From the IMG/VR virus record IMGVR_UViG_3300026097_000876, positions 62,001 to 126,000 of that record: 64,000 nt of DNA; one strand, 5' to 3'. Each line of letters begins with the position of its first letter. The first letter of the stretch is position 1. Of this stretch, positions 1 through 63,284 are shown piece after piece. The position numbers were made by a program, and so were the translations under genes. Below the pieces are notes generated by a model. The model searched no databases. It saw only the letters and a list, made by a program, of their open reading frames with translations, and was not told where the DNA came from.

Positions 1-2
1 AT

Positions 3-368
3 ATGCAAAACTTTACACAAGCAGCACTTGCAGACGTGCAAGCACTAGTTAACACTTACGCTAATATTGCGGGCGATTACGAAGCAACGCTGTTATGCGG
101 CGTATGGCACTACATGTGCGACAGCGGCATATACACAGACGCATTTAGCGAAGCAGATGCGGAGTATGTAGAAGCGCACTACGACAACAATGTGCAATAC
201 TACAACGACGACGATTGCGGCTACACAGACGCATTTTATGCTGTAATATTTGACGACGATAAATTGCAATGCAATGCAGTGTTACAAGCACAAGATGCAA
301 TTGCAAACAAGCATAATTTGCATAACGAAGATGTTGCACGTATGTGTATGCAACTAGAAGCAAGTTAA
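3..368 (+). CDS. Early hypothetical protein, acidic, 121 aa
   Basis: ORF from ATG at 3; followed by an early promoter; D/E-rich; no Pro. Confidence 0.75.
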   Translation: MQNFTQAALADVQALVNTYANIAGDYEATLLCGVWHYMCDSGIYTDAFSEADAEYVEAHYDNNVQYYNDDDCGYTDAFYAVIFDDDKLQCNAVLQAQDAIANKHNLHNEDVARMCMQLEAS

Positions 369-381
369 TTGTAAAAAACAC

Positions 382-410
382 TTGACAGCAGCATGCTTTT
401 GTAGTATGCT
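382..410 (+). promoter_or_regulatory. Early sigma70-type promoter
   Basis: TTGACA(382-387)-17 bp-TATGCT(405-410); GAGGGC RBS at 438. Confidence 0.8.
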
Positions 411-448
411 GCTGCATATACACTAAAAAATTGCAAAGAGGGCAAACT

Positions 449-901
449 ATGCAATACAACAAGATTTTTACAAACTGCGCTGTAGTAAGCGACGAGAATT
501 TTGACTTGCTTACAGCAGAACAGCTAGAAGCATTTACACAAGCGGAACGTGCTTTTGTGCTTGTGTTTTTAGCAGACACACTTGCAAACTTGACACAGGT
601 TAACGCAGACTGTGCAGTAGAAAACGACAACTACTTTGTGCGACTAGCGGATGCGCAGGAGGTTATGCAAAATTTGCAAATGCTGTACGACACACTAGAC
701 GACAGCGACGACTGTACAAATATACAGTTTACGCTAGCGGATGCGGGTGCTGCGCTGTGTAGTTACGACACAGAATACAGGGAATGCATAGCGGAGCAAT
801 TTGAAGACGCATGCGACAACGCTGCTAAACTTGCAAAGCAAACTGGCAACACAAACGCAGACTACAGCACACTTGCTGTGCGTGTGCTGTGTAGTTATTA
901 A
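449..901 (+). CDS. Early hypothetical protein, acidic, 150 aa
   Basis: ATG 449 after GAGGGC RBS (ORF track starts at TTG 431). Confidence 0.8.
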   Translation: MQYNKIFTNCAVVSDENFDLLTAEQLEAFTQAERAFVLVFLADTLANLTQVNADCAVENDNYFVRLADAQEVMQNLQMLYDTLDDSDDCTNIQFTLADAGAALCSYDTEYRECIAEQFEDACDNAAKLAKQTGNTNADYSTLAVRVLCSY

Positions 902-908
902 AAAGGGG

Positions 909-937
909 TTGACAAATGTGTTTATGTGTGCTACTAT
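909..937 (+). promoter_or_regulatory. Early sigma70-type promoter
   Basis: TTGACA-17-TACTAT; GAGGGC at 963. Confidence 0.8.
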
Positions 938-973
938 GTACACATAAACAATTAATTGCAAAGAGGGCACGCT

Positions 974-1177
974 ATGCAAAAACTAAACGAAAAAGCACTA
1001 CAGCAGTGGAACGCAACACGGCGTTTTATGCGTACACTAGACGAAGCGCAGCTGCATTTATTAATAGCGGCGCTAGACGGCGACAACAAGTTGCAAGTTA
1101 CGCAAACGCTAGTAGACAGCGCATATGACGCAATAGACGACAACATGCGCAAACAATATGCACAACACTTAAAATAG
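974..1177 (+). CDS. Early hypothetical protein, 67 aa
   Basis: ATG 974 after GAGGGC RBS. Confidence 0.8.
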   Translation: MQKLNEKALQQWNATRRFMRTLDEAQLHLLIAALDGDNKLQVTQTLVDSAYDAIDDNMRKQYAQHLK

Positions 1178-1180
1178 GGG

Positions 1181-1208
1181 TTGACAACTGTGCATATTGT
1201 GTTATACT
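1181..1208 (+). promoter_or_regulatory. Early promoter, -10 enclosed in an 11-bp inverted repeat
   Basis: TTGACA-16-TATACT with TGn extension; AACTGTGCATA(1186-1196)/TATGCACAGTT(1210-1220). Confidence 0.8.
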
Positions 1209-1241
1209 GTATGCACAGTTAAACAATATAGAGGGCACTAT

Positions 1242-1502
1242 ATGCAAAACACTACATACTATCCTGCCGCAGTCGCAAACGTTATAACACATTACGCACA
1301 AGCAATTGCACGTGCTAGTTATGACAGCGTAGTGGAAGCAGGCGACTACAGCATAACAGACAACTGTGCAAAAATACAGTACCTGTTGTCTGCTAGTGCG
1401 CAACACACCTCAGTTAAAAGTCTAGCAGTTGCCGCACTAAACAGCGCAGAGGATACAGTGCTGCGCGAATGCATGTACACACAATTAATGCAACACGCAT
1501 AA
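1242..1502 (+). CDS. Early hypothetical protein, 86 aa
   Basis: ATG 1242 after GAGGGC at 1231. Confidence 0.8.
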   Translation: MQNTTYYPAAVANVITHYAQAIARASYDSVVEAGDYSITDNCAKIQYLLSASAQHTSVKSLAVAALNSAEDTVLRECMYTQLMQHA

Positions 1503-1527
1503 TCTAAATAAGAATCATTTGCATTTA

Positions 1528-1558
1528 GGAGGCTGTAAATAATTACAGTCTTCTTTTT
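1528..1558 (+). terminator. Rho-independent terminator
   Basis: GGAGGCTGTAA-ataa-TTACAGTCTTC followed by a T run. Confidence 0.65.
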
Positions 1559-1570
1559 GCAAATTAGGGG

Positions 1571-1599
1571 TTGACAGGCGCAACCTTTGAGACTATACT
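1571..1599 (+). promoter_or_regulatory. Early sigma70-type promoter
   Basis: TTGACA-17-TATACT. Confidence 0.85.
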
Positions 1600-1635
1600 G
1601 TATAAACAATGAAGCATTAGAGAGAGGGTTTTGAA

Positions 1636-1920
1636 ATGCGAGTAGTTGAGCAATATGGCATGTTTACCGACGCTGGTGACAAGATGGTAGACCGCATAGT
1701 ACGTGCCGCACTCCAGTTGGGGCAAGAGCAGGCAGCTACCAATGCCGATGTGTGGGGATTTGCATATCGCGAGTTGGAGAAGCTCCAGACCAGCTTAGAG
1801 TTCTCGGAAGCAACAGACACCGTAGTACGTGAGGAAGTGTTCTCAGCACTGTGGGACAACCTTCCAGGATTTAATCTAACAGAAGAAGAGTACTGGTTCT
1901 TTGTTGAGGAGACAGCGTAA
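1636..1920 (+). CDS. Early hypothetical protein, 94 aa
   Basis: ORF after GAGGGT RBS. Confidence 0.8.
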   Translation: MRVVEQYGMFTDAGDKMVDRIVRAALQLGQEQAATNADVWGFAYRELEKLQTSLEFSEATDTVVREEVFSALWDNLPGFNLTEEEYWFFVEETA

Positions 1921-2081
1921 TGATGAATCAATATTTCGTTTACTATGATGGTCGGTTCCAAGGAACTGTGATGGCACTGAGTGAACAGAGTGCAAAGCAA
2001 AAGGCCGGACAGATGGTTGGTGTGAGTGCAAGTGCCTACACCGGCCGAGCAAGTCGTTTGGTAGAGGTAGTAAGACGATGA
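1920..2081 (+). CDS. Small hypothetical protein, 53 aa (MMNQYFVYYDGRFQG...)
   Basis: Read by hand; TAATG coupling upstream and ATGA coupling downstream; below the ORF-track cutoff. Confidence 0.65.
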   Translation: MMNQYFVYYDGRFQGTVMALSEQSAKQKAGQMVGVSASAYTGRASRLVEVVRR

Positions 2082-2320
2082 AATTTCTATTGCTGAGCAC
2101 AGCACTGATGGGAAGCGAACCCATGCTGTACCAAGACCGTGCGGTTTGCGTGGAGGCCGCAGAGAAGATCACTCTGAGCATGGGACTGGGCGAAGCGACT
2201 TGTATCCCCGCACCCATGAACCTGCAACAGGATCCACAAACAGTATTCGAGAACATGATCAAACTGATAAACAGCCAAAAGCAGTTGACAGACACTAAAC
2301 CAGGTGCGCCGATAAACTAG
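2078..2320 (+). CDS. Hypothetical protein, 80 aa, hydrophobic N-terminus and two Cys
   Basis: ORF track; ATGA overlap. Confidence 0.7.
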   Translation: MKFLLLSTALMGSEPMLYQDRAVCVEAAEKITLSMGLGEATCIPAPMNLQQDPQTVFENMIKLINSQKQLTDTKPGAPIN

Positions 2321-2323
2321 GGG

Positions 2324-2352
2324 TTGACAACTCGGGGTGCTCTTGCTATACT
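2324..2352 (+). promoter_or_regulatory. Early sigma70-type promoter
   Basis: TTGACA-17-TATACT. Confidence 0.85.
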
Positions 2353-2377
2353 AGTTTCACAGTTAGGAGGGCATCCA

Positions 2378-2542
2378 ATGGCTAAGAAAGTTCGTACACC
2401 GCAGAAACCTAAACCACGCAACTGGGTTGCCAAGTCCGTCCGTGACCTAGACGGTCCTTATCGTCCTCGAGCAGAACGGGATCGCACCAAGTTCACTCGC
2501 AAGAAAAAACATAAAAAAGAGGTTGACAACGATCCTAGTTGA
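2378..2542 (+). CDS. Small basic protein, 54 aa (MAKKVRTPQKPKPRNWVAK...)
   Basis: ATG 2378 after GGAGGGC; K/R-rich. Confidence 0.7.
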   Translation: MAKKVRTPQKPKPRNWVAKSVRDLDGPYRPRAERDRTKFTRKKKHKKEVDNDPS

Positions 2543-2551
2543 TCATATACT
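2523..2551 (+). promoter_or_regulatory. Early sigma70-type promoter overlapping the 3' end of the upstream ORF
   Basis: TTGACA-17-TATACT. Confidence 0.85.
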
Positions 2552-2582
2552 GTATATAACAGTTAGGGCATTGGAGGGCAAC

Positions 2583-2864
2583 ATGGCATACTACACTTAC
2601 ACCCAAGCACCGATAGGTTGTTTCGTAGAGCGGGACACCGGCAATTACTTTGAGTATAGCCTCAACGAAGAATGCTATGACAAGCCCATGGCCATCTTTC
2701 CACACAAGGTATGGGTAGGTGGAGAAGGCGTATGCGGCATGACTGGCTGGCGCTATGCAATCGTCAAGAAGACTGTGGCAACTGTTGTGGTAGACGAAGA
2801 CGAGTATGGTTATCCTGTGCTAGAGAAATGGAAGCTCAAGTCCAACAAGGAGTATGCGGTATGA
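2583..2864 (+). CDS. Early hypothetical protein, 93 aa
   Basis: ATG 2583 after GAGGGC. Confidence 0.8.
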   Translation: MAYYTYTQAPIGCFVERDTGNYFEYSLNEECYDKPMAIFPHKVWVGGEGVCGMTGWRYAIVKKTVATVVVDEDEYGYPVLEKWKLKSNKEYAV

Positions 2865-3049
2865 TTAGGATCTTCAACTCAGCTTACCCAGGCACAGACA
2901 CCAAACTGTCACTGGAAGAAGTCAACATTGTCACACAGCAGATTGACTGGATGGGCCGTCCTTTCATTATGTTTGAGCACAGTGACTATCCACTGGGCGC
3001 TGTGGTCGCAACCTTTGATGGAGAATATTGGCAGGCTGATCTAGATTAG
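2861..3049 (+). CDS. Hypothetical protein, 62 aa (MIRIFNSAYPG...)
   Basis: ATGA overlap with upstream stop; AGGAG RBS. Confidence 0.7.
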   Translation: MIRIFNSAYPGTDTKLSLEEVNIVTQQIDWMGRPFIMFEHSDYPLGAVVATFDGEYWQADLD

Positions 3050-3052
3050 GGG

Positions 3053-3081
3053 TTGACAAACCCAGCCGTTGAGCATATACT
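3053..3081 (+). promoter_or_regulatory. Early sigma70-type promoter
   Basis: TTGACA-17-TATACT. Confidence 0.85.
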
Positions 3082-3113
3082 GTATAGACACTGAAGCATT
3101 AGAGGGCAATCAA

Positions 3114-3434
3114 ATGCAAGCACAAATCGAAAAACTCATCCAAGACATCAAAGACAACTACGCTGAGTTCTGTGATCGTGAAGACATGGTCACTGCGTTC
3201 AACGAAGGTGTTACCGCCAAAGCTGGTAAGAAGTATGTGAAGATCCTCAAGAAGCTGGGATCGCAGACAATGGTGTGGGGTTTCATCGTAAATGTAGATG
3301 ACGATAAGAAGTTCCGCAAGGGCGACTTGTTGATGGCGGCGGGCTTCAATGCTCCTGCTCGTAACAAGCCGCGTGGTAACATCCTAGACGGTGGATATAC
3401 TATTCGTTGGACCGGTCCGGGGTACTTGAAATGA
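3114..3434 (+). CDS. Conserved phage hypothetical protein, 106 aa
   Basis: ATG 3114 after GAGGGC; GKKYVKI...APARNKPRGN...WTGPGYL pattern resembles a family I recall from T4-like phages. Confidence 0.75.
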   Translation: MQAQIEKLIQDIKDNYAEFCDREDMVTAFNEGVTAKAGKKYVKILKKLGSQTMVWGFIVNVDDDKKFRKGDLLMAAGFNAPARNKPRGNILDGGYTIRWTGPGYLK

Positions 3435-3538
3435 GAGAGTACAACGAGAAAGCGGTAGAGCGAGAGATCCGAAAGGATCCTCGCATCAAGGGCAAAGAAG
3501 CCAAACTCATTAAGGCACTGTTAAAGGGACGCAAGTAA
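3431..3538 (+). CDS. Small basic protein, 35 aa (MREYNEKAVER...)
   Basis: Read by hand; translationally coupled at both ends. Confidence 0.6.
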   Translation: MREYNEKAVEREIRKDPRIKGKEAKLIKALLKGRK

Positions 3539-3750
3539 TGGCTTTGGAAACTCTACAGGAGACCACTGAAGGTCTCCACCCTCATACCTATCTCGTGGAC
3601 AACACCAAAGGCAAGATGTATGCCTATAGACGAGAGGACGGAGAGATCAATGTATTCTCCAAGCCGCTGACGTTTGGAAAAAAATACAGAAAGTTTAATA
3701 AAGTGGTTGACAACGAACTCGAACGAGCATATACTATATATAACAGTTAG
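3538..3750 (+). CDS. Hypothetical protein, 70 aa
   Basis: ORF track; TAATG coupling. Confidence 0.75.
   Translation: MALETLQETTEGLHPHTYLVDNTKGKMYAYRREDGEINVFSKPLTFGKKYRKFNKVVDNELERAYTIYNS
3707..3735 (+). promoter_or_regulatory. Early sigma70-type promoter inside the upstream ORF
   Basis: TTGACA-17-TATACT. Confidence 0.85.
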
Positions 3751-3768
3751 GGCAAAGAGGGAATACAC

Positions 3769-3942
3769 ATGCAAGGCACAATCCGAATCGTAGCAGGCTT
3801 CTTCCTTATGTTAGGCGGCGTAGGCGCCATCGAAAGCAACACAGAAGTCACAGTTCCGCTAGATAGCTTGGCAATTGCTGTTGCGGGTTTGGTTATTATG
3901 GCAAGCGGTGCATTGGCCGCGGCTCGACAGGAGACAGTGTAA
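3769..3942 (+). CDS. Small membrane protein, 57 aa, two predicted TM helices
   Basis: Read by hand; ATG after GAGGGA; MQGTIRIVAGFFLMLGGVG...LAIAVAGLVIMASGALAAA. Confidence 0.7.
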   Translation: MQGTIRIVAGFFLMLGGVGAIESNTEVTVPLDSLAIAVAGLVIMASGALAAARQETV

Positions 3943-4142
3943 TGGAAACGGTAACAGTCTACAAAGACTCATATGATCAACTTTGTGAAGAGCGGAATGC
4001 TGCCAGCTATAACTTGGCCACGCTCAAAGGTATGCTGATCGGCCTAAGCGGCTACTGTGATGAGCATCCGCAGATTGTATCGGACCGCATTAAAGAAATT
4101 GCACAAAAACTTGAATTAGAGGTTGACATCTCTAAACTTTGA
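3942..4142 (+). CDS. Hypothetical protein, 66 aa
   Basis: ORF track; TAATG coupling. Confidence 0.75.
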   Translation: METVTVYKDSYDQLCEERNAASYNLATLKGMLIGLSGYCDEHPQIVSDRIKEIAQKLELEVDISKL

Positions 4143-4151
4143 TCGTATACT
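4123..4151 (+). promoter_or_regulatory. Early sigma70-type promoter
   Basis: TTGACA-17-TATACT. Confidence 0.85.
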
Positions 4152-4187
4152 GTATAGACAATGTTAAACAACGCGAGGGCAAACGCA

Positions 4188-4346
4188 ATGGATTACAGAG
4201 ATTACGCAATTGAAATGGTTGAAGACGGCATAGTAGATCCTATGATGATGCTTACGGCCGCTCTCAAATATATGAGCCAAGACGACGTTCGTGATATGCT
4301 TACAGCGAACGAACTGGACTCACGCTTCGAAGAGGAGGACGCATAA
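4188..4346 (+). CDS. Hypothetical protein, 52 aa
   Basis: ATG 4188 after GAGGGC. Confidence 0.7.
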   Translation: MDYRDYAIEMVEDGIVDPMMMLTAALKYMSQDDVRDMLTANELDSRFEEEDA

Positions 4347-4831
4347 TGCCTAACTGGTGCATGAACAATGCAGACATCACAGCCACAACAGAAGAGCAGA
4401 AGGCACTGTTGTATCGTGTAAGCACAGCAGAAGCCGCAGACGGATTCTTCGAACTGCTTCGTCCACTGGGAGAGTGGGACTACAATAACTCAGTGGACAA
4501 CTGGGGAACCAAGTGGGATGTAGAACCTCTGAGTATGGAATACGATGGCACAACACTCACAGCATCGTTCGACTCAGCCTGGGCACCACCAGTGGCACTG
4601 TATGAGTATTTGAAAGAACAGGGCTTCGAAGTATCAGCCAACTATTACGAACCCGGCATGGACTTCGCAGGCGAGTGGACGGATGGTGATGACTTCGTGT
4701 TAGAGGATGTAGCAGAACTTGCTCGTGGTGATGAGAGTGCTCTGAGCAAACGCGAATACGACATCCTGGAGCAATGGGGCATCTTTGAAGACGTTGCCAT
4801 GTGGGATGAAGAACTTCAGGAAATAGATTAA
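4346..4831 (+). CDS. DUF1281/YubB-like ferredoxin-fold protein
   Basis: MPNWCxN, WGTKWD, FDSAWAPP, YYEPGMDFAG motifs. Confidence 0.7.
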   Translation: MPNWCMNNADITATTEEQKALLYRVSTAEAADGFFELLRPLGEWDYNNSVDNWGTKWDVEPLSMEYDGTTLTASFDSAWAPPVALYEYLKEQGFEVSANYYEPGMDFAGEWTDGDDFVLEDVAELARGDESALSKREYDILEQWGIFEDVAMWDEELQEID

Positions 4832-4841
4832 TTAAAGTTAT

Positions 4842-4918
4842 CTCCGCGTAGCTCAGCTGGATAGAGCATGGGATTTCTAATCCCAGGGTCGCAGGTTCGA
4901 ATCCTGCCGCGGAGGCCA
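4842..4918 (+). tRNA. trnR: tRNA-Arg(UCU)
   Basis: Cloverleaf; anticodon loop TTTCTAA; GGTTCGAATCC T-arm; encoded CCA. Confidence 0.95.
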
Positions 4919-4924
4919 AATTTA

Positions 4925-5011
4925 GCTCCCTTGGTGGAATAGGTAGACACAAGAGACTTAAAATCTCTCGCTGGAAACAGTGTCCCGGTTCGAGTCCGGG
5001 AGGGAGCACCA
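4925..5011 (+). tRNA. trnL: tRNA-Leu(UAA)
   Basis: Long variable arm; loop CTTAAAA; encoded CCA. Confidence 0.95.
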
Positions 5012-5017
5012 AGTTAA

Positions 5018-5093
5018 GGACCTATAGCTCAGTGGTTAGAGCACCCCACTCATAATGGGTTGGTCCCTGGTTCGAGTCCAGGTGGGTCCACCA
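5018..5093 (+). tRNA. trnI: tRNA with CAU anticodon, most likely Ile2 (lysidine, reads AUA)
   Basis: Loop CTCATAA; body closely resembles bacterial tRNA-Ile2 (AGCTCAGTGGTTAGAGCA...CTCATAAT...TTGGTC.CTGGTTC); CCA end. Confidence 0.85.
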
Positions 5094-5111
5094 ATACAAA
5101 GGAGAAGACGA

Positions 5112-5381
5112 ATGTCAATTTACGAAGTGTCACCGGAATACAAGAAGCTATGCCACGTCGGTGCTGATATGCAGGACTGGTCCGAGAACTATGGTAAGCT
5201 CCACGGACTGAAAGATGTCACGGACGATGGTTTACGCATGCTCAATCAAATGAGCCAAGTAGGCTGTATGCTCACACGTTTGGGCACTACCTTTGGCACA
5301 ACTGAGAAGAGCTTCACAGATGAAGACAAGCAATTAATTTCAAAATTTATGCAGAATAAGGTTGACATCGAGCGCAAGTGA
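5112..5381 (+). CDS. Hypothetical protein, 89 aa
   Basis: ATG 5112 after AGGAG. Confidence 0.75.
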   Translation: MSIYEVSPEYKKLCHVGADMQDWSENYGKLHGLKDVTDDGLRMLNQMSQVGCMLTRLGTTFGTTEKSFTDEDKQLISKFMQNKVDIERK

Positions 5382-5390
5382 CCATATACT
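5362..5390 (+). promoter_or_regulatory. Early sigma70-type promoter
   Basis: TTGACA-17-TATACT. Confidence 0.85.
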
Positions 5391-5422
5391 ATATATAACA
5401 GTTAGGGCAAAGGGCAATCCAA

Positions 5423-5818
5423 ATGACAACACTTCTTCAGCACATCGAATCTCTTAACGCAAAAGCAGACCTTATGATGGAGCAGGAGCCAGGCCTGTGG
5501 ATGAGCAAGTACACAGACGACATGAGCTTCTGGGCTGACATGGGAGTCTACACTGTAGAGGACTTCAAGCGCAGCCAACTGATCGATGGCATTAGTGATG
5601 CGTCTAAGGATCTCAACGGATGTCGTTTGCGCCTCAACTGGGATGTGATGAGCATGGAAGAACTAGAAGATACTTACGACAGCATCTGTTCTGCACTGAA
5701 CCGCCAGTTCGAAGCTGAGCAGGAAGCAGAGGCTTATGAAGCAGAACTGCGCAAAGGGTTGTCAGACAACTGTGAGCCACTACCCTACGAAGAATACGCA
5801 GACTTGGAGGCAGTGTAA
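5423..5818 (+). CDS. Acidic hypothetical protein, 131 aa
   Basis: ORF track; AAGGGC RBS. Confidence 0.8.
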   Translation: MTTLLQHIESLNAKADLMMEQEPGLWMSKYTDDMSFWADMGVYTVEDFKRSQLIDGISDASKDLNGCRLRLNWDVMSMEELEDTYDSICSALNRQFEAEQEAEAYEAELRKGLSDNCEPLPYEEYADLEAV

Positions 5819-5994
5819 TGATCAACTTGATAATTGGATTTGTGTTAGGGGCACTGTACATGAACGGAACCCTTGCTGAGTTTGGAGACATCATGTTGAA
5901 CCTTGTGAACAGCACAGCAGAGCAAGTGTCAGCGGCTACTGAGCCAACCACACTAGAAAAATTAGAACAGAAAATGGTTGACCTAACTGACTAA
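5818..5994 (+). CDS. Small protein, 58 aa, N-terminal TM or signal segment
   Basis: Read by hand; MINLIIGFVLGALYM...; TAATG coupling. Confidence 0.65.
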   Translation: MINLIIGFVLGALYMNGTLAEFGDIMLNLVNSTAEQVSAATEPTTLEKLEQKMVDLTD

Positions 5995-6006
5995 AGGTCG
6001 TATACT
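5978..6006 (+). promoter_or_regulatory. Early sigma70-type promoter
   Basis: TTGACC-17-TATACT; TGAGGGCA RBS at 6026. Confidence 0.8.
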
Positions 6007-6036
6007 TAAACAATAGCAAAACACATGAGGGCAACC

Positions 6037-7047
6037 ATGCAGAACATTAGAATTTTAGAAGGCACTTACAAGATCCGCGGCAAAGAAGTTGAACTGGCCG
6101 GAATGGTATTTCCACTGGTAGAAGAGTTCAAGGTTGGTGCGGGCGGCGGCTACGTAACGGTGAATGGTGCAACGGTCGCAGGCTTTCCGGACCGCAACAT
6201 CAAGATCAAATGCGAGAGCGCACAGTCATACGAGATTGTAGACAGCTCCGTAGCCGTCGTCCAGCGTGAGGAGACCGATGAAGAGACTATCGATCGCCTG
6301 CGTGAACGTTTCGACATGTTGGAGGAGATGACCAAAGCCTGCAAGAAAGGCGATGTACGTGCAATGATTGTGAGTGGCCCTCCAGGTGTTGGTAAGAGTC
6401 ACGGTGTAGAAAAAGTACTAGGCAAGCACGATCTTCTAGCAGAGATTGCCAACGACGAGAAGCTGAAGAAGTACGAAGTGGTCAAGGGCGCGATGAGTGC
6501 GATTGGTTTGTATGTAAAGCTATACAAGATGGCAGACAAAGACAACGTGGTAGTGTTCGATGACTGTGACAGTATCTTTTCAGATGAACTCAGCCTTAAT
6601 ATTTTAAAAGCGGCACTGGACACAAAGAAGACACGTCGCATCTGTTGGAACACTGACAGCTTCAAGCTGCGCAACGAAGGTGTGCCAGATAGCTTTGAGT
6701 TCAAAGGTAGTGCGATCTTTATCACCAACATCAAGTTCGACAACGTCAAGAGCAAGAAGATGCGTGATCACCTAGAAGCACTTGAAAGCCGTTGCCACTA
6801 TGTTGATCTAACAATCGACACAGAGCGAGAGAAGATGTTGCGCATCAAGCAGATTGTTACCGACGGTATGCTGGACGAATACAGATTCGACGAAGAAGTA
6901 CATCAAGAGATTGTAGACTTTGTTGATATTAATAAGAAGCGACTGCGTGAGCTGTCATTAAGAACAGTGTTGAAAGTCGCCGACTTAGCCAAAGCATTTC
7001 CCAGCAATTGGGAAGCGATGGCAGAGAACACAGTGATGAAACGTTAA
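6037..7047 (+). CDS. AAA+ P-loop ATPase
   Basis: Walker A GPPGVGKS; Walker B VVVFDDCD; sensor-1 FITN; SRC motif. Confidence 0.85.
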   Translation: MQNIRILEGTYKIRGKEVELAGMVFPLVEEFKVGAGGGYVTVNGATVAGFPDRNIKIKCESAQSYEIVDSSVAVVQREETDEETIDRLRERFDMLEEMTKACKKGDVRAMIVSGPPGVGKSHGVEKVLGKHDLLAEIANDEKLKKYEVVKGAMSAIGLYVKLYKMADKDNVVVFDDCDSIFSDELSLNILKAALDTKKTRRICWNTDSFKLRNEGVPDSFEFKGSAIFITNIKFDNVKSKKMRDHLEALESRCHYVDLTIDTEREKMLRIKQIVTDGMLDEYRFDEEVHQEIVDFVDINKKRLRELSLRTVLKVADLAKAFPSNWEAMAENTVMKR

Positions 7048-7156
7048 GCCCTCAACGACATCACTGGGTAGAAGTAGAGCATCCCTCATATGCCCTCACG
7101 CTCTACTTCGAAACTAGCCTCACTTGGACCGCCCTCATCCAAGTGGGGTTTTTTTT
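7048..7156 (+). ncRNA. Candidate 3'UTR-derived sRNA with CCCUCA loops complementary to the early-gene RBS
   Basis: 10-bp stem GAAGTAGAGC/GCTCTACTTC with loop ATCCCTCATATGCCCTCAC; terminator loop CCGCCCTCA; extra GCCCTCA at 7048. Confidence 0.55.
7118..7156 (+). terminator. Rho-independent terminator
   Basis: 11-bp stem CCTCACTTGGA/TCCAAGTGGGG followed by T8. Confidence 0.9.
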
Positions 7157-7158
7157 GG

Positions 7159-7187
7159 TTGACATCTCACCCCAACGACCTTATACT
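7159..7187 (+). promoter_or_regulatory. Early sigma70-type promoter
   Basis: TTGACA-17-TATACT; GAGGGC at 7206. Confidence 0.85.
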
Positions 7188-7217
7188 ATAAACAGTTAAA
7201 GCAAAGAGGGCAATCTT

Positions 7218-7502
7218 ATGTCGCAACGTCAAGCATTCGCAAATAACCACAACACACAACTCGCTCGCATAGTCAGCAAGCTCATCCGCAAGCACATTCC
7301 CACAAACCCACAGCTCACCACAGCATTCAATCAATTCAATCACAGCATGTATCTGCATCGTGTGTTGTACAAATATCATGTCAGCGCACTCAAGCACACA
7401 ATCCACAAGCCGCGCATGCAAGCCTATTTCGTTCGCATCCTGCGCAACAATCCACAAATCCTAGTCAACACCGCCCATACACCCACAGCATATCAAAAGT
7501 AA
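7218..7502 (+). CDS. Basic hypothetical protein, 94 aa, lacking D, E, G and W
   Basis: Promoter and GAGGGC RBS directly upstream. Confidence 0.7.
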   Translation: MSQRQAFANNHNTQLARIVSKLIRKHIPTNPQLTTAFNQFNHSMYLHRVLYKYHVSALKHTIHKPRMQAYFVRILRNNPQILVNTAHTPTAYQK

Positions 7503-7510
7503 AAAAGAGG

Positions 7511-7539
7511 TTGACAGCGTACGGCTTAGGTCGTATACT
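7511..7539 (+). promoter_or_regulatory. Early sigma70-type promoter
   Basis: TTGACA-17-TATACT; TGAGGGCA RBS. Confidence 0.85.
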
Positions 7540-7574
7540 TAATATAACAGTTAGCACGCCATGAGGGCAACAAG

Positions 7575-7736
7575 ATGAAGACTTCAGAAGAAATACAGGC
7601 TCAGATCCTCGAGTTGGAAGAGGAGATTGAAAACTACGAGTTTGGATCTTACCCGTATGATGTAGTGAATGCCGAGCTTCAATACCTGTATGCCTTCAAC
7701 TCAAATTCGGTTGACAGCAAACGGGGCACACCATGA
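7575..7736 (+). CDS. Small acidic protein, 53 aa (MKTSEEIQAQ...)
   Basis: Read by hand; RBS upstream. Confidence 0.65.
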   Translation: MKTSEEIQAQILELEEEIENYEFGSYPYDVVNAELQYLYAFNSNSVDSKRGTP

Positions 7737-7894
7737 ACGACTTTCAAGCACTACTAGAAGCACTAATTCCTTTCGTACAGTATGGATTCATCGCGGGCGT
7801 GACCATTGCTGTGATTGTGGCCGCGGCAAAGATCGGATTTAAGATTGCACCATACGTATTATTATTTGCTGCGATTGTTTACTTTTTCGGTTGA
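7733..7894 (+). CDS. Small membrane protein, 53 aa, two TM helices
   Basis: Read by hand; ATGA overlap; stop TGA lies inside the next -35 box. Confidence 0.7.
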   Translation: MNDFQALLEALIPFVQYGFIAGVTIAVIVAAAKIGFKIAPYVLLFAAIVYFFG

Positions 7895-7919
7895 CAACAC
7901 AGCACATTGATCATATACT
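7891..7919 (+). promoter_or_regulatory. Early sigma70-type promoter
   Basis: TTGACA-17-TATACT; GAGGGA RBS. Confidence 0.85.
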
Positions 7920-7952
7920 GCATATAACAGTTAGGGCAAAGAGGGAATACAC

Positions 7953-8126
7953 ATGCATATCAACGACATCTACGCATTGCGTTCAGAGTTATCAAAGCTG
8001 TTAGCAAACGAAACTCCTGATCGACCAACCGTCCGTGCATTGATGAGTGCGGCCTGCGACGAGATCACAGAGTTCGAAGCACACCTAGAACTGATGGCAG
8101 AACGTGAGGAGGCAGCACAATGTTGA
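7953..8126 (+). CDS. Small hypothetical protein, 57 aa (MHINDIYALR...)
   Basis: Read by hand; RBS upstream. Confidence 0.65.
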   Translation: MHINDIYALRSELSKLLANETPDRPTVRALMSAACDEITEFEAHLELMAEREEAAQC

Positions 8127-8332
8127 AACTGTTACAACGACTGGTAGCACTACAAGAGAACCGTGACTATCGTACTAATGAGATCATATGGAACTATGTG
8201 GATGCTGATGCGTATCACTATGCGAGAGAACTGTACAACACAGACGATGAGTTCTATGATGCATTCAACGCAGCCGCTGACGAAATAGATCGTGAAATAG
8301 CACAGAAAATGGTTGACAACACAGCACACTGA
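8120..8332 (+). CDS. Hypothetical protein, 70 aa
   Basis: ORF track; GAGGAGG RBS. Confidence 0.75.
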   Translation: MLKLLQRLVALQENRDYRTNEIIWNYVDADAYHYARELYNTDDEFYDAFNAAADEIDREIAQKMVDNTAH

Positions 8333-8341
8333 CCATATACT
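8313..8341 (+). promoter_or_regulatory. Early sigma70-type promoter
   Basis: TTGACA-17-TATACT; near-identical to the promoter at 7891. Confidence 0.85.
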
Positions 8342-8376
8342 GTATACACAATGAAGCAATAGATAGAGGGCATACT

Positions 8377-8724
8377 ATGCAATTGGAACAACACAACATT
8401 GAACTAGCACACACTAACGCACTAGCAGCAGCTGAGGCAGCAAGCCAAGCGTTCGTGGACAAACACTTTGGTGGTAGAGACGCAGGCGCTTGTGGCTTTG
8501 CGCACGTAGCAGTGTTTGGTGTACGTGCTAACAGCAAGCTGGGCAAAGCACTAGAAGCAGTAACAGGAGCGCGGAAGTGTTATGATGGAGCATTCCAAAT
8601 CCGCAACACATGGTACCGTGGACAGAGTGTAGACGCAGCTGACGCAGGTGCGCAAGCATACAAGGACACATTCAAAGCACTAACAGGACTTGACAAAGTC
8701 TACGCAGCAAGTAGACTAGACTAA
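8377..8724 (+). CDS. Conserved phage hypothetical protein, 115 aa
   Basis: GAGGGC RBS; DAGACGFAHV...QSVDA..AGAQAY...SRLD pattern. Confidence 0.8.
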   Translation: MQLEQHNIELAHTNALAAAEAASQAFVDKHFGGRDAGACGFAHVAVFGVRANSKLGKALEAVTGARKCYDGAFQIRNTWYRGQSVDAADAGAQAYKDTFKALTGLDKVYAASRLD

Positions 8725-8765
8725 CAACAAGAGTGTAGGCAGCAGGCTCGGATCTGCATGCAAGA

Positions 8766-8794
8766 AAGGGACGGTGGCAACACTGTCCTTTTTT
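8766..8794 (+). terminator. Rho-independent terminator ending the + strand early region
   Basis: AAGGGACGGTG-GCAA-CACTGTCCTT followed by a T run. Confidence 0.9.
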
Positions 8795-8818
8795 CTTATG
8801 CGCACAAAACACACAGCC

Positions 8819-8848
8819 AAAAAAAAGCACAGCGTATGTGCTGTGCTT
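8819..8848 (-). terminator. Rho-independent terminator, minus strand
   Basis: GCACAGC/GCTGTGC stem with A8 on the + strand. Confidence 0.8.
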
Positions 8849-8864
8849 GTGTGTTAACTAAACA

Positions 8865-9047
8865 CTACACATCAAAGTGCAGTGTTACTGATTCAGGAAT
8901 ATAGTCTGCGTCAGTTACTTCGCCCATTTGCTCAAACAGTTCCGCACTGTGCAGTTCAAGTTCTTTTGCTGAGTAGTGCGAAAACGCTGTTACTTGCAAG
9001 TGTTGCGGTAGTGCTTGCAGCTGTGCTACTAGTTCGCTTACTAACAT
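8865..9047 (-). CDS. Early hypothetical protein, 60 aa (MLVSELVAQLQALPQH...)
   Basis: ATG 9047 after GGAG RBS and its own promoter. Confidence 0.75.
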   Translation of the reverse strand: MLVSELVAQLQALPQHLQVTAFSHYSAKELELHSAELFEQMGEVTDADYIPESVTLHFDV

Positions 9048-28019: not shown

Positions 28020-28948
28020 GCATATTCTCTCATATGTTTCCAGCATTCGCCGGATCTTAATTCATCTAATGTCCAATGACTCATCGCAAGTCTTCTAAGC
28101 CATGCTTCTCTGTCAAACTCAAAATTTGGATTTTCAATATTTTTAAGATTTGTATTTGCCACATCTCTAGCTTGACTGCGTTTAGGATCAATTACAAAAA
28201 TTGGAACACCTTCAATAGCGGCAATTACCGCCGGACTGCTATTGTAACTAATCACAGCGCATGCATCATGTAAGTCTTTTAACAAAGAACTAGTCGGAGA
28301 TGAAATTTCTACTTTATGTCCTATTGCTTTGAGCTGTTGAATGTGTTTGTCAATTTTTTTGTCACCTGGATGAAATCGTACAAGGATACGTTTATCTGTA
28401 AATTTTCTTAAATTTTGTAACAAGGGATGTAACCAATTAATAATTTTTAATCCGTCCATACTCCATCCACCATCACGTTGACAAGTAATCAGAATATAAT
28501 CACCATACTTTTTCCAAGGTTTGAGTTGTAGTCCTAATCTATCTCGCAACTTGCCCCAACGTGCAGGATCAATTTTATCGTCACAGTATTCTCCCGTGGT
28601 TGGAAAAATACCATCATAGCTGTATCTTAAATATGATTTAGTATTTCCAGGATCGTATGCTAAAAATAAGTTACTGTCAGCAATAATAGTTCTACCTCCT
28701 AATTCAGATTGCGAAGATAATACTCGACGGCGTAAATCTAAATGAGGTACATTTTTACTACCTGGATGAACAAACCCTTGTAATATACCAACATCTGCTG
28801 GCTCGTATTGAAACGTATTAATTAGTTGACCTTTATCTTCTAATGAACGCACACCTTGAATAAAATACTCTAAAAGTTTTGGTTTTTCTTGATTCTTATT
28901 TCCAGGTGGTATTGCTTTCATATAAGCATTAACTTTAAAAGGCCTCAT
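28007..28948 (-). CDS. GT-B-like / capsule-biosynthesis-like protein, paralog 2
   Basis: VRFHP, YNSSPAVIAAIEGVP, REAWLRRLAMSHWT. Confidence 0.55.
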   Translation of the reverse strand: MRPFKVNAYMKAIPPGNKNQEKPKLLEYFIQGVRSLEDKGQLINTFQYEPADVGILQGFVHPGSKNVPHLDLRRRVLSSQSELGGRTIIADSNLFLAYDPGNTKSYLRYSYDGIFPTTGEYCDDKIDPARWGKLRDRLGLQLKPWKKYGDYILITCQRDGGWSMDGLKIINWLHPLLQNLRKFTDKRILVRFHPGDKKIDKHIQQLKAIGHKVEISSPTSSLLKDLHDACAVISYNSSPAVIAAIEGVPIFVIDPKRSQARDVANTNLKNIENPNFEFDREAWLRRLAMSHWTLDELRSGECWKHMREYAWKK

Positions 28949-47159: not shown

Positions 47160-48161
47160 TTACTTTTTATAGTTTTGATAAAAAGTTTCTAGTTCTTCTT
47201 TAATTTTATCTTTTAGTGCCATTGGATTATCTCCGCCTGCAACTTTTGGATATGATTTTTTGGATTTGTTTAAATCATTTCCGCTTCTACTCATATCCGA
47301 ATATGATGAATAATGTTCGTTTGGTTCGTTTTCATAATCTTCACCTGTTAGTTTATCGCCAATTGATGATCCAGCTACTGAACCTGCTAGTGCTGGGAGT
47401 GCTTTGCCAGCTGCTTGTCCTATTGCTGCTCCAGTGGGGCCAGCAATAGCACCGCCCAGGGCACCGCCTGCTGCACCCAATGCATCGGCGGCTCCTGCAC
47501 CTAATGTCGATCCTGCTGCTCCACCTAATACACCGCCTGCTAACGAACCTAACATACCGGCTTGTAAATCTTGATCGCCTTCAACATCGTCGCGACCTGG
47601 AATATTTGGGTCATCTTCATCGTCGCTGTTTAATGCTCCGCCAATTGCACCGCCTGCTGCGGCTCCTAAAGGTCCGCCGACCATGCCGCCCAGTGCCGCT
47701 CCTGCTGCTCCGCCAAGGCCACCACCGCCTGCTAATGCTCCTAAAGGTCCGCCGAGGGCACCGCCTGCTAATGCACTACCTGCTCCTGCGCCAATGCCTG
47801 AGCCAATAGCACCTGCTGTTAAGTCTTGGTCGCCGGGTACATCGTCCCTTCCAGGAATGTCTGGATTATCATCTAATGCTGATCTAAATTTTTCCATATC
47901 TGAACGCATATTTCCAGTTGGTGCTGAAACTTCCTGCGGATTCATTCCTGCATTACGCATCATTGCCATTAATTGCCCAACTTGACCTGCATCATCTGCT
48001 GTCATTGAAATGTTCATCGAGGCTGATTCGTTAACAACTTCTTTAGTTGACGCATCATGAAATCCTTCTAAAATAGCCTTCATGTCGTTTGCATCGGTTT
48101 TATTAGATGTGCCGCTAGTTGATACACCGTCCATTGCTTGTAAGATTTTTTTCATGTCCAT
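47160..48161 (-). CDS. Gly/Ala-rich glycine-zipper protein with an internal duplication
   Basis: Two IPGRDDV.GDQDL.AG units, each followed by GxxxG repeats. Confidence 0.75.
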   Translation of the reverse strand: MDMKKILQAMDGVSTSGTSNKTDANDMKAILEGFHDASTKEVVNESASMNISMTADDAGQVGQLMAMMRNAGMNPQEVSAPTGNMRSDMEKFRSALDDNPDIPGRDDVPGDQDLTAGAIGSGIGAGAGSALAGGALGGPLGALAGGGGLGGAAGAALGGMVGGPLGAAAGGAIGGALNSDDEDDPNIPGRDDVEGDQDLQAGMLGSLAGGVLGGAAGSTLGAGAADALGAAGGALGGAIAGPTGAAIGQAAGKALPALAGSVAGSSIGDKLTGEDYENEPNEHYSSYSDMSRSGNDLNKSKKSYPKVAGGDNPMALKDKIKEELETFYQNYKK

Positions 48162-59861: not shown

Positions 59862-60311
59862 ATGAATCAAGAAATCATTTGTAGTGGTGCATTAATTTAT
59901 TCTTTAAAATCTAAACGTTTTTTACTTTTGCATAGAACACAAAGTAAACAAAAAAATGTTTGGGGATTAGTAGGAGGAACAAACGGAAAAAATGAACGTC
60001 CGTGGCCTGCACTACAAAGAGAAATCATAGAAGAAGTTGGTGAACTTCCTAATATTGTAAAAACAATTCCGCTCGAAACATTTGTTAGCACAGATGAAAA
60101 ATTTAGTTTTCATACATATCTAGTAGTTGTTAATGACGAATTTTTACCAATATTAAACGAAGAACACGATGGTTACGCATGGGTAAGTTTTGACAAATGG
60201 CCCAAGCCATTACATCAAGGCCTACGCAATACATTACAAAATAAAACAAATCAAACAAAATTAAAAACCGTTTTTGACCTAATAGGATATTTACAAAATG
60301 AAGCAGATTAA
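59862..60311 (+). CDS. NUDIX hydrolase
   Basis: Nudix box GG..GKNE.PW.ALQREIIEEVG; LNEEHDGYAW. Confidence 0.8.
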   Translation: MNQEIICSGALIYSLKSKRFLLLHRTQSKQKNVWGLVGGTNGKNERPWPALQREIIEEVGELPNIVKTIPLETFVSTDEKFSFHTYLVVVNDEFLPILNEEHDGYAWVSFDKWPKPLHQGLRNTLQNKTNQTKLKTVFDLIGYLQNEAD

Positions 60312-61809
60312 AAACATTACTATTGTAGGTGGAGGTTCAGCCGCTTGGCTAGCAGCTACTTACATACAAAATAATCACTGGGACTTACCCATTACTGTAA
60401 TCGACAAAGAAGTAGGTAATCCTATAGGAGTGGGCGAAGCAACGGTGCTTACATTCCCACATTTTTTAAGAAAATGTGGTATAAATTTGCCAGAATGGTT
60501 TAGAAATATTGATGCTACATACAAGTCTGGCATTGAGTTTCCTCATTGGAAAAGACCTAACAATAATGTTTGGCATCCATTTTACCTAAATAGAAGTTAC
60601 TTTGCACAAGGATGTACAGCATATGACCTTTGGGCACAAAAGCAAGATCTAGATTTTAGAAAAACAGCACTTCCGACTTATAACGTTAATATGAATAACA
60701 AACTTGATATGTGGGGAGCATTTGAAACCCTTGCGTATCATATTGACGCTGGAAAACTTGTTACAGAGTTACAAACGATTTGTGGACAAAATGTTAATGT
60801 AATTAAAAGCGATGTTGTAAAAGTAAACAAAGATGGTAACAATGTAACTAGCGTTGAACTTAAAAACGGTGCTGTACATGAAAGTGACTTTTTTATCGAC
60901 TGTACAGGATTTGCTAGTATTCTTAAAGAAGCTGACCGTGTAGAGCTATTAGGTGAAGGAAGATTATTTACAAATGCTGCTGTTGCCGGACATATTCCGT
61001 ATGAAGATTTTGAAAAAGAATGTACTCCGTATGTAAAATGTCCTGCTGTTGATCACGGTTGGATCTGGAAGATACCTGTGCAATCACGCATCGGATCAGG
61101 ACTTGTATTTAATAAAGATATTACAGACCCAGAGGAAGCAAAACGTTATTTCTGCGAACACTGGGATAATCGAATAAAACCAGAAGATCTAAAGTTAATT
61201 GACTGGGTTCCTTATTACAGTAAAAACTTTTGGGAAGGTAACGTAGTTTCAATTGGACTAAGTGGCGGATTTATCGAACCGTTAGAGTCTACAGGGCTTG
61301 CTAGTATGACCACTGGTGTTGAAAAATTAATGGATATGATTCCTCAATATGCTTATACTGATGCTAATGTAGAAACTTATAATAGAGAAATGGAAGTTTG
61401 GTATAATGATGCTGTTGATTTTGTTAACAGCCATTATGCTGACACAGAATGGGATACACCTTTTTGGAATTATGTAAAAGAAACCCATGTAAAATCAGAA
61501 AAACATTTATGGTATGAAGATTGGTTAAAAGATCCACAACGTAAGTTTTATACTCCGGTGCAGTCACGCACACTGTTCCATCCGCCAAATTGGCATTTGT
61601 GGTTGGTACAAATGGGGTATCCAGTAAATGTAGATCTTAACTATATGCCTCCGCAAGAAATAGAGTTTCTTTTGAGAGATTTTCAACTGGCTGAAGAAAT
61701 TAGAATGCACACTAGTCAAAGTCATATAGATGCTATTGAATCAACTAATCTTGGATTAGACTGGTTAGTATTAGCACAGTCTAGGGGAGATAGGGGCCAA
61801 TTGGTATGA
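60298..61809 (+). CDS. Flavin-dependent (tryptophan) halogenase, copy A
   Basis: VGGGSAAW; GVGEAT; catalytic K in DATYK; GWIWKIP; FIEPLESTG. Confidence 0.9.
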   Translation: MKQIKNITIVGGGSAAWLAATYIQNNHWDLPITVIDKEVGNPIGVGEATVLTFPHFLRKCGINLPEWFRNIDATYKSGIEFPHWKRPNNNVWHPFYLNRSYFAQGCTAYDLWAQKQDLDFRKTALPTYNVNMNNKLDMWGAFETLAYHIDAGKLVTELQTICGQNVNVIKSDVVKVNKDGNNVTSVELKNGAVHESDFFIDCTGFASILKEADRVELLGEGRLFTNAAVAGHIPYEDFEKECTPYVKCPAVDHGWIWKIPVQSRIGSGLVFNKDITDPEEAKRYFCEHWDNRIKPEDLKLIDWVPYYSKNFWEGNVVSIGLSGGFIEPLESTGLASMTTGVEKLMDMIPQYAYTDANVETYNREMEVWYNDAVDFVNSHYADTEWDTPFWNYVKETHVKSEKHLWYEDWLKDPQRKFYTPVQSRTLFHPPNWHLWLVQMGYPVNVDLNYMPPQEIEFLLRDFQLAEEIRMHTSQSHIDAIESTNLGLDWLVLAQSRGDRGQLV

Positions 61810-63284
61810 AAATTGTAGTAGTCGGCGGCGGCACGGCTGGATGGCTTGCCGCATTAATGATTTCAAAAATACGTCCTGAACATGATGTCACTGTTATTGA
61901 AAGTAGTAAAATTGGCATTGTCGGTGCCGGGGAAGGTAGTACCGGAACACTTACAAATATTGTACAAAACGAAATGTGGAATCTTGGCTGTAACGAACAA
62001 GATTTTATCAAAGAGTGTGATGCTACAATCAAATTAGGAATTAAACATATAGGTTGGAATAAAGATCCTAAAAAATATTACATCGGTCCAATTGACGGAA
62101 CACCGACTTCTAACGACAGAGCCGATATTATTTTTCAACATGCCTTAGGTTACAGAGACGAAAATTTATTACATATTTCAACAGAGCTTGGTTATAAAAT
62201 TCATCATAATAAAAATAGTTTCGTTGAGACTGCTGGTAATCACGCATATCATTTTGATGCTCATAAAGTAGGAAAATACTTTAAAAAAGTTAGTAATACT
62301 GTAAAACATATTGACAGCGAAGTAGAACATGTTATACTAGACAGTGAATCAGGTAGAGTAAAAGAATTAAAATTGTCAAATGATGAAATAGTCCAAGGCG
62401 ATATGTTTATTGATGCAAGTGGCTTTCATCAAGTTTTAATGAAAGCTGTTGGAGGTAAATGGAAAAGTTATAAAGAAAATTTACCAGTTAATAGTGCATT
62501 ACCGTTTTTACTTCCATATGAAGAAGATGAAGTTATTGAACCTGTTACAAATGCATGGGCACAAAAAAACGGTTGGTGTTGGCAAATTCCAACAAAAGAA
62601 CGTCGAGGATGTGGATATGTATTTTGCGATGATTTTGTAACTCCTGATCAAGCACATGCTGAACTTGAGCAAACAATTGGTCGTAAAGTTGACCCAATTA
62701 GATTATTAAAATTTGATAGCGGAAGACAGGAAAAATTGTGGGTTAAAAATGTATTGTCTATCGGATTGTGTGCTGCGTTTGCAGAGCCGTTAGAAGCAAC
62801 AAGTATTCACACAACAATTATTCAGTTAAAACATTTTGTATTTGGTTGTTTAGGAGTTGATGTAGACGATACTTGTAATCCTGCACAAGTTGATAATTAC
62901 AATCAACAAAATGGTCATTTATACGACAATATGAAAGACTTTCTTGTTGCGCACTATACGTGTGGCAGAAATGATTCTGAATTTTGGAAACATATCGACA
63001 GCGGTGCAACAATTACTCCGTTTGTACAATCAATACACGAGATCTGCAAGCACAGGATGCCTAACTCAACTTTATTCCCACGCCAAGAGGGAAGTGCCGG
63101 ATGGCCTTTATGGAGTTTTGTTCTTGCAGGTACAGGAAAACTAACAGATACAATTGCTAGACAAGAACTTAAATTTAATCATGATGAAATGTTAAGCGAT
63201 AGTGCATATCAATATCACACAAAAGAACATCACTCAATGAGTGAATCATTACCGGATAATACCAACTACATAAAAGGCATTTAA
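61806..63284 (+). CDS. Flavin-dependent (tryptophan) halogenase, copy B
   Basis: VGGGTAGW; GAGEGS; DATIK; GWCWQIP; FAEPLEATS. Confidence 0.9.
   Translation: MKIVVVGGGTAGWLAALMISKIRPEHDVTVIESSKIGIVGAGEGSTGTLTNIVQNEMWNLGCNEQDFIKECDATIKLGIKHIGWNKDPKKYYIGPIDGTPTSNDRADIIFQHALGYRDENLLHISTELGYKIHHNKNSFVETAGNHAYHFDAHKVGKYFKKVSNTVKHIDSEVEHVILDSESGRVKELKLSNDEIVQGDMFIDASGFHQVLMKAVGGKWKSYKENLPVNSALPFLLPYEEDEVIEPVTNAWAQKNGWCWQIPTKERRGCGYVFCDDFVTPDQAHAELEQTIGRKVDPIRLLKFDSGRQEKLWVKNVLSIGLCAAFAEPLEATSIHTTIIQLKHFVFGCLGVDVDDTCNPAQVDNYNQQNGHLYDNMKDFLVAHYTCGRNDSEFWKHIDSGATITPFVQSIHEICKHRMPNSTLFPRQEGSAGWPLWSFVLAGTGKLTDTIARQELKFNHDEMLSDSAYQYHTKEHHSMSESLPDNTNYIKGI

Follow-up and report, generated by a model that had tools for sequence, protein, structure and literature searches.

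A clade of uncultured marine jumbo phages keeps, directly after an early ATPase gene, an array of RNA hairpins whose stems differ between lineages and whose loops display GCCCUC, the exact complement of the box in front of their early genes. It is a real, conserved RNA element that we did not find described and probably a new regulatory RNA, although the proposed action, pairing of the loops with the early leaders, is plausible but inferred from sequence alone. The observation in the original prediction, a run of CCCTCA-bearing hairpins between the ATPase stop codon and its terminator, was correct in every sequence statement and indeed understated, whereas its interpretation as an sRNA that represses early translation by binding a phage-specific Shine-Dalgarno sequence was only partly supported.

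Genomic context

The window (the whole 64-kb stretch of DNA analyzed) is bases 62001-126000 of a 261.8-kb IMG/VR contig and encodes a T4-type large terminase, tail sheath, gp15-like sheath stabiliser, DnaB-like helicase and other phage proteins. Two adjacent genes at 60298-63281 (+) (503 and 492 aa) match the tryptophan halogenase family very strongly (E = 1e-85 and 2e-94), which is an unusual auxiliary function for a phage. No close DNA relative was found among 50,697 deposited phages, and by protein the nearest cultured relatives are PA5oct-like Pseudomonas jumbo phages (30-47% identity). Positions 1-9000 on the + strand form an early region with 16 near-consensus sigma-70-type promoters (TTGACA-N17-TATACT), many small genes and three tRNA genes (Arg-TCT, Leu-TAA, Met-CAT; 4842-5093, +), which lie between two early operons. 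The 10 kb upstream of the window holds no further early cassettes or GCCCUC hairpins, but at about 9827 (- strand) of locus L258 (L numbers designate the loci compared here), just upstream of the window start, a divergent promoter of the early type has a leader UUAGGGCAAAGGCAC followed by G-rich sequence and no obvious start codon, and may give a non-coding transcript that marks the left edge of the early region.

The ATPase gene (6037-7047, +) starts at the ATG at 6037 and encodes a 336-aa AAA-type ATPase related to T4 NrdC.10 and phrog_1250, with no solved structure matching by sequence. It is preceded by a promoter (TTGACC 5978-5983, TATACT 6001-6006) and a leader (5978-6036, +) with the box UGAGGGCA at 6026-6033 just before the ATG, and the same cassette type is found in front of the ATPase in relatives. 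The next early promoter (TTGACA 7159-7164, TATACT 7182-7187) and its leader (7159-7217, +), with GAGGGCA at 7206-7212, start directly after the ATPase terminator.

Structure of the hairpin array

CCCTCA starts at 7049, 7083, 7093 and 7132, which are four of the nine + strand copies in 64 kb; GCCCTCA is at 7048, 7092 and 7131, and TCCCTCA at 7082. As claimed originally, TGAGGGCA is at 6026 and 7562, and GAGGGA at 3757 and 7941. All four copies lie in predicted unpaired loops of three stacked hairpins (H0, H1 and the terminator). H0 (7031-7066, +), which the original prediction missed, spans the ATPase stop codon: an 8-bp outer stem (7031-7038/7059-7066) is formed by the last ATPase codons and the downstream sequence, and an inner 4-bp stem (7042-7045/7054-7057) closes an 8-nt loop AAGCCCUC (7046-7053), which holds two bases of the stop codon (7045-7047) and motif copy 1 (7048-7053). 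H1 (7071-7109, +) has a perfect 10-bp stem (7071-7080/7100-7109) and a 19-nt loop AUCCCUCAUAUGCCCUCAC with copies 2 and 3, and belongs to the class with the conserved string GCCCUCACGCUCU. The last hairpin (7116-7156, +), and only this one, is an intrinsic terminator, in which an 11-13 bp stem at 7116-7150 (7118-7128/7138-7148) carries copy 4 in the 9-nt loop CCGCCCUCA (7129-7137) and is followed by T8 (7149-7156); the same loop class GGACCGCCCUCAUCC occurs in relatives L007 and L024.

The region folds at -39.9 kcal/mol (z = -3.95 against shuffles), and each of the four copies has a predicted unpaired probability of 0.88-0.93, whereas opening the stems would cost 7-9 kcal/mol. A cluster of four copies of a G+C-rich hexamer within 95 nt arose in 1 of 200 Markov simulations of the window, and the comparative data below make chance irrelevant. 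The only other places in the window where a hexamer occurs four times within 95 nt are 47701-47784 (+) and 28352-28447 (+) (CCTGCT and AATTTT), both inside long reading frames of the other strand.

Conservation in related phages

Relatives were retrieved with the ATPase protein from IMG/VR and from JGI/ENA metagenomes. Among 100 distinct 3' regions from phages whose ATPase is 70-100% identical, 99 carry CCCTC (one to five copies) within 250 nt of the stop and 96 carry two or more, and 250 of 270 copies (93%) fall in predicted loops, against a 24% background for any 5-mer. In contrast, all 30 distinct regions from relatives below 66% identity (62% or less) have none, and PA5oct also lacks the element. 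A survey of all hairpins of at least 8 bp in 35 non-redundant loci, made without reference to the motif, put GCCCT, CCCTC and TGCCC at the top of the loop words.

The stems share no sequence between lineages but covary strongly. In 26 distinct hairpins chosen only by the loop word GTGCCCTCG, 81.7% of stem cells are paired against 50.8% in shuffles (0 of 500 shuffles reach this) and 34-48% in slid registers, 11 of 12 pairs show double changes, and the three pairs next to the loop are paired in every sequence with four or five pair types. This alignment was anchored on the loops because MAFFT/RNAalifold on whole 3' regions, in which hairpin number and length vary, misaligned H0 and recovered only the terminal hairpin; RNAalifold nevertheless found the same hairpin independently. 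H0 is also conserved, with a mean uninterrupted outer stem of 8.0 bp against 5.5 bp with shuffled downstream sequence, and the stop codon lies in or next to the apical loop. Recognisable hairpin classes recur in a roughly fixed order: the stop-codon hairpin, a class with GCCCUCACGCUCU (H1 here), and terminal classes with U-GUGCCCUC-G or GGACCGCCCUCAUCC (the terminator of the window). Therefore, we conclude that this is a real, selected, RNA-level structure, and this conclusion is secure.

The window has only one such cluster, but in some relatives extra hairpins or terminators with GCCCUC loops lie at other early operon ends (L008 781-810, L010, L014, L033 and L040 with two sites each, L027 4723-4756, L229 3807-3840), many with the loop GCCCUCNNAGAAAG. 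A two-loop pattern scan of IMG/VR gave mostly chance hits in G+C-rich phages, and only 9 of 120 loci held the ATPase. A covariance model of the UGUGCCCUCG class found only main-clade loci and did not score the window's own hairpins at E of 1 or less, because they belong to other loop classes. Searches of Rfam 15 gave only three tRNAs above gathering score in the whole window, and in 6950-7220 the best hits under permissive thresholds (E = 0.33-8.5) were far below their gathering scores.

The complementary leader box

In the early region (382-8376, +), 15 of 16 promoter-proximal leaders carry (G/A)AGGG(C/A/T) 4-9 nt before the first ATG (GAGGG at 438, 963, 1231, 1624, 2367, 2574, 3102, 3757, 4175, 6027, 7206, 7563, 7941, 8366; AAGGGC at 5410), of which eleven are GAGGGC, and several carry a second AGGGCA nearer the 5' end (2565, 3749, 5404, 7933). 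None of 53 later genes on the other strand has the box (they use AGGA or GGAG), and internal cistrons of the early operons use GAGGAG or GGAGAC. The box thus belongs to the promoter-leader cassette, as the original prediction said. It is conserved throughout the clade, and its invariant core AGGGC(A) is the exact complement of the loop core (U)GCCCU.

The leader boxes are predicted to be accessible (median opening cost 1.0 kcal/mol), and in several leaders the box sits in the loop of a small hairpin whose 3' arm includes the start codon. Predicted loop-leader duplexes are -13 to -16 kcal/mol for single boxes and reach -21 to -23 kcal/mol where the double loop of H1 meets, in two parts, the doubled boxes in the leaders of promoters P2523, P3707 and P7891, against a mean of -5.5 to -7 kcal/mol for control start regions.

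The early promoters (382-8341, +, e.g. 7182-7200) share more than the two hexamers: a G-rich run (AGGGG or AGAGG) precedes TTGACA, and the -10 element runs into a conserved start region, TATACT-GTATATAACAGTTAG, in which TATAC/GTATA is a perfect inverted repeat and TATAAC is a second -10-like word, which may be an operator or a sigma-dependent pause site. In several early promoters (382-414, 919-950, 1186-1220) the spacer or -10 region is part of an 11-12 bp perfect inverted repeat with the start of the transcript (e.g. TGTTTATGTGT/ACACATAAACA), which differs from promoter to promoter.

Tests of loop-leader pairing

The strongest loop word is the exact reverse complement of the strongest leader word, and both are present in one clade and absent from its sister clades, including one clade (L233, L078) with the same promoter layout but GGAG leaders. 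Relatives that keep GAGGGC leaders but lack the CCCTC loops, which had been named beforehand as a refuting case, were not found: 99 of 100 distinct loci of the clade have the loops and the one exception has GCCCUU/GCCCUG loops. In the window UGCCCUCA is complementary to UGAGGGCA at 6026-6033, as in a 3'UTR anti-Shine-Dalgarno element of the icaR type, and 92 of 98 distinct relatives have at least 6 nt of complementarity to their own ATPase leader, some up to 10 nt; the particular 8-nt match to UGAGGGCA that was pointed out originally is not conserved in relatives. In the L036 lineage (seven or more distinct contigs) most early leaders have drifted to GAGGA, GAGAA or AGGA, yet the ATPase leader keeps GAGGGC and H0 keeps GCCCUC, with a 10-nt perfect match UAGCCCUCUC/GAGAGGGCUA between the stop-codon loop and the gene's own leader in L266 and L270, while the other loops have become CUCCC/CUCUC-rich. 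The loops of this lineage were predicted to pair with its changed leaders only slightly better than the window loops (-11.0 against -9.0 kcal/mol).

However, two direct tests for loop/leader covariation, which the original prediction had asked for, were not significant. The longest complement between a genome's own ATPase leader and its own 3' region (mean 7.13 nt) is no better than between genomes (6.96 nt), and the variable base next to the core does not co-vary across 81 loci (loop CCCU-N against leader N-AGGG, Spearman 0.11, p = 0.35). Counter-examples exist (L096, L332 and L296 have AAGGG leaders with CCCUC loops, and L212 has CCCUU loops with GAGGG leaders), so the attractive single case L323 (GCCCUU loops with AAGGGC leaders) is anecdotal. 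Both motifs are nearly invariant, and the case therefore rests on one gain/loss event plus the complementarity itself. Loop conservation also goes beyond the complementary core and is wider than that of the leaders: U-GUGCCCUC-G is invariant at 10 positions in one class, and the 13-nt string GCCCUCACGCUCU of another is kept even where its pairing register differs, which is more typical of protein recognition or a defined loop fold. Further, in the distant clade that lacks the hairpins (L073, L064, L077, L244, L043, L049) the 75 nt before the ATPase start holds three spaced copies of UAAGGCAA or UUAGGCAAA, the last at the ribosome-binding position (AAGGGCAC in some), indicating that the box has an older function of its own.

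Interpretation and alternative explanations

We presume, tentatively, that 7031-7156 is the structured 3' end of the early transcripts that finish at the ATPase terminator (no strong + strand terminator was found between the upstream promoters and this point), and that its three hairpins serve to display (U)GCCCU(C) in unpaired apical loops, which would base-pair with the (G/A)AGGGC(A) boxes at the Shine-Dalgarno position, and often again near the 5' end, of promoter-proximal early leaders. Pairing would occlude the ribosome-binding site and lower translation and/or stability of early mRNAs. The oldest and most constant partner seems to be the ATPase mRNA's own leader, reached in cis or in trans, and in the main clade, where nearly every early leader carries the box, the array could damp the whole early class, a function comparable to that of T4 RegB. 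This is the best-supported mechanism, but it rests on complementarity, accessibility and co-occurrence only, and since the ATPase gene is itself early the array is made together with its supposed targets. Our analysis demonstrates the structure and its conservation, the loop motif and its predicted accessibility, the class-specific leader box, and the complementarity and co-occurrence of the two; pairing in vivo, the sign of the effect and the existence of a processed small RNA are inferences. The discrete 3'UTR-derived sRNA of the original prediction cannot be inferred from sequence. RNAs of this kind (CpxQ/SroC type) are stable, share the mRNA's terminator and are made by processing or from an internal promoter; here the terminator and U8 tail are present, and no sigma-70-like promoter lies in 6900-7040. 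The alternatives offered with it, 5'-3' autoregulation of the ATPase mRNA and a loop array that binds a protein, gain some support, the former from the L036 lineage and the latter from the extended loop conservation.

A more far-reaching version, which we consider unlikely but not excluded, is that the array is a multivalent anti-leader RNA whose 3-5 GCCCUC loops seize the (G/A)AGGGCA tags of all promoter-proximal early mRNAs and switch the early class off together, an RNA counterpart of the T4 RegB nuclease that relatives sharing the tag could also use against each other on co-infection.

The most serious rival, doubtful but less so than the remaining ones, is that the loops are recognition sites for a phage or host RNA-binding protein, which could set 3'-end stability or processing, tune termination or read-through at the terminator whose own loop carries the site, or be titrated by the array as by a sponge, the complementarity to the leader box then being secondary or coincidental. 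The extended conservation of U-GUGCCCUC-G, GCCCUCACGCUCU and GGACCGCCCUCAUCC, the roughly fixed order of the hairpin classes and the lack of loop/leader covariation speak for this view; CGCUCU resembles the first 6 nt of the lambda boxA, and the position at a gene end just before a terminator is like that of lambda nutR. On the other hand, the match between the top loop word and the top leader word would be a roughly 1-in-thousands coincidence, the two features are present and absent together across clades, and no candidate protein was identified. The array is not a lambda-type nut site, which has boxA (CGCUCUUA) followed by boxB, a 5-bp stem with a pentaloop, since only CGCUCU is present, inside the 3' arm of H1, and the loops are 8-19 nt; moreover, the downstream genes have their own strong promoters, so antitermination is not needed. 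The motif also lacks the GGA that CsrA needs.

It is unlikely that the element is only a passive 3'-end module, in which stacked hairpins stop 3' exonucleases and insulate neighbouring early transcription units and the loop sequence has no partner. Stacked 3' hairpins are a common stabiliser, and the last hairpin is a standard terminator followed at once by a promoter, but stabilisers need stems rather than loops, and here the stems drift freely while the loops are invariant across about 100 distinct loci. Other terminators in the same loci use unrelated loops such as UUCG or GGGAGACU, the latter conserved in a terminator about 1 kb after the ATPase in relatives (L004 4127-4154, L008 3440-3467) and Shine-Dalgarno-like, the opposite sense of the C-rich loops. 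Very unlikely is a DNA-level role of GAGGGC/GCCCTC as the site of a DNA-binding protein acting at the early promoters, with the ATPase-distal cluster as inverted copies, for although the box lies at fixed distances downstream of the -10 element, is often doubled (AGGGCA N4-10 AGGGCA) as is typical of operators, and goes with the promoter rather than with translation, this explains neither why each distal copy sits at the centre of an inverted repeat whose arms covary nor why the array ends in a U-tract on the + strand only. Chance is negligible. We also rejected a small ORF (only a spurious TTG frame at 7008-7199), a CRISPR repeat, a riboswitch (no conserved junction), a tRNA-like element, and REP/BIME-type palindromic repeats, because the stems differ in every locus and only the loops are conserved, and the window has a single cluster.

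Comparison with known systems

Proven precedents exist for C-rich loop or 3'UTR motifs that pair with a Shine-Dalgarno sequence. In the icaR mRNA of Staphylococcus aureus (PMC3868564), a C-rich motif in the 3'UTR is complementary to that mRNA's own ribosome-binding site and can act in cis or in trans; icaR has one UCCCCUG motif in a long 3'UTR of a cellular gene, with pairing and RNase III cleavage shown, whereas here 3-5 redundant loop copies with a different word occur in a phage, the box is shared by a whole gene class, and the action is predicted only. The UCCC-motif small RNAs of Gram-positive bacteria, LhrC, RsaE and RNAIII (PMC4132741, PMC2790875), display redundant C-rich motifs in hairpin loops, including the terminator loop (LhrC, PMC4132741), and bind the G-rich Shine-Dalgarno region, and one RNA may bind several mRNAs. 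The array likewise has four predicted unpaired copies complementary to 15 of 16 early leaders, but those RNAs are independent genes of cellular genomes with their own promoters, while the array starts inside the ATPase reading frame as the 3' end of an mRNA without a detectable internal promoter, the promoters are of the sigma-70 TTGACA type, and the motif is GCCCUC.

Another comparison is the P1/P7 c4 antisense RNA (PMC12197685). The c4 RNA is a phage RNA with loops complementary to a ribosome-binding region in the same phage and made from the same transcription unit, but it has two specific loops for one target (icd/ant) in a temperate phage; Rfam includes c4, and the array matched no Rfam family. 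The T4 RegB endoribonuclease (PMC3014915) acts on a class-specific tag in the Shine-Dalgarno region of early mRNAs (GGAG in T4), which allows early messages to be switched off together, and the ATPase here is a relative of T4 NrdC.10; RegB is a protein nuclease, whereas the effector proposed here is RNA. CsrB/RsmZ-type sponge RNAs also show the same short motif on many hairpins, but the defining GGA loop that binds CsrA/RsmA is absent here, and the motif is its near-complement.

The literature search found no description of the element and no paper linking GAGGGC, Shine-Dalgarno and phage. The array would work like an icaR-type element and like UCCC-loop small RNAs, and differs in that it is viral, is multivalent with distinct conserved hairpin classes, includes the stop codon of its gene, and has as its proposed partner a box that tags a whole temporal gene class. 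If the loops do pair with the leader boxes, this would be, as far as we could find, the first case of a lytic jumbo phage using a built-in 3'-end RNA to control its own early gene class through the ribosome-binding site, readable directly from sequence in about a hundred environmental genomes; it would add a viral, multi-loop, class-wide version to the few proven bacterial 3'UTR/anti-Shine-Dalgarno systems and would explain why these phages give their promoter-proximal early genes an unusual, invariant leader box. Even if the partner turns out to be a protein, the array is a well-supported new structured RNA motif with invariant loops, covarying stems and a fixed genomic address, and a good candidate for Rfam.
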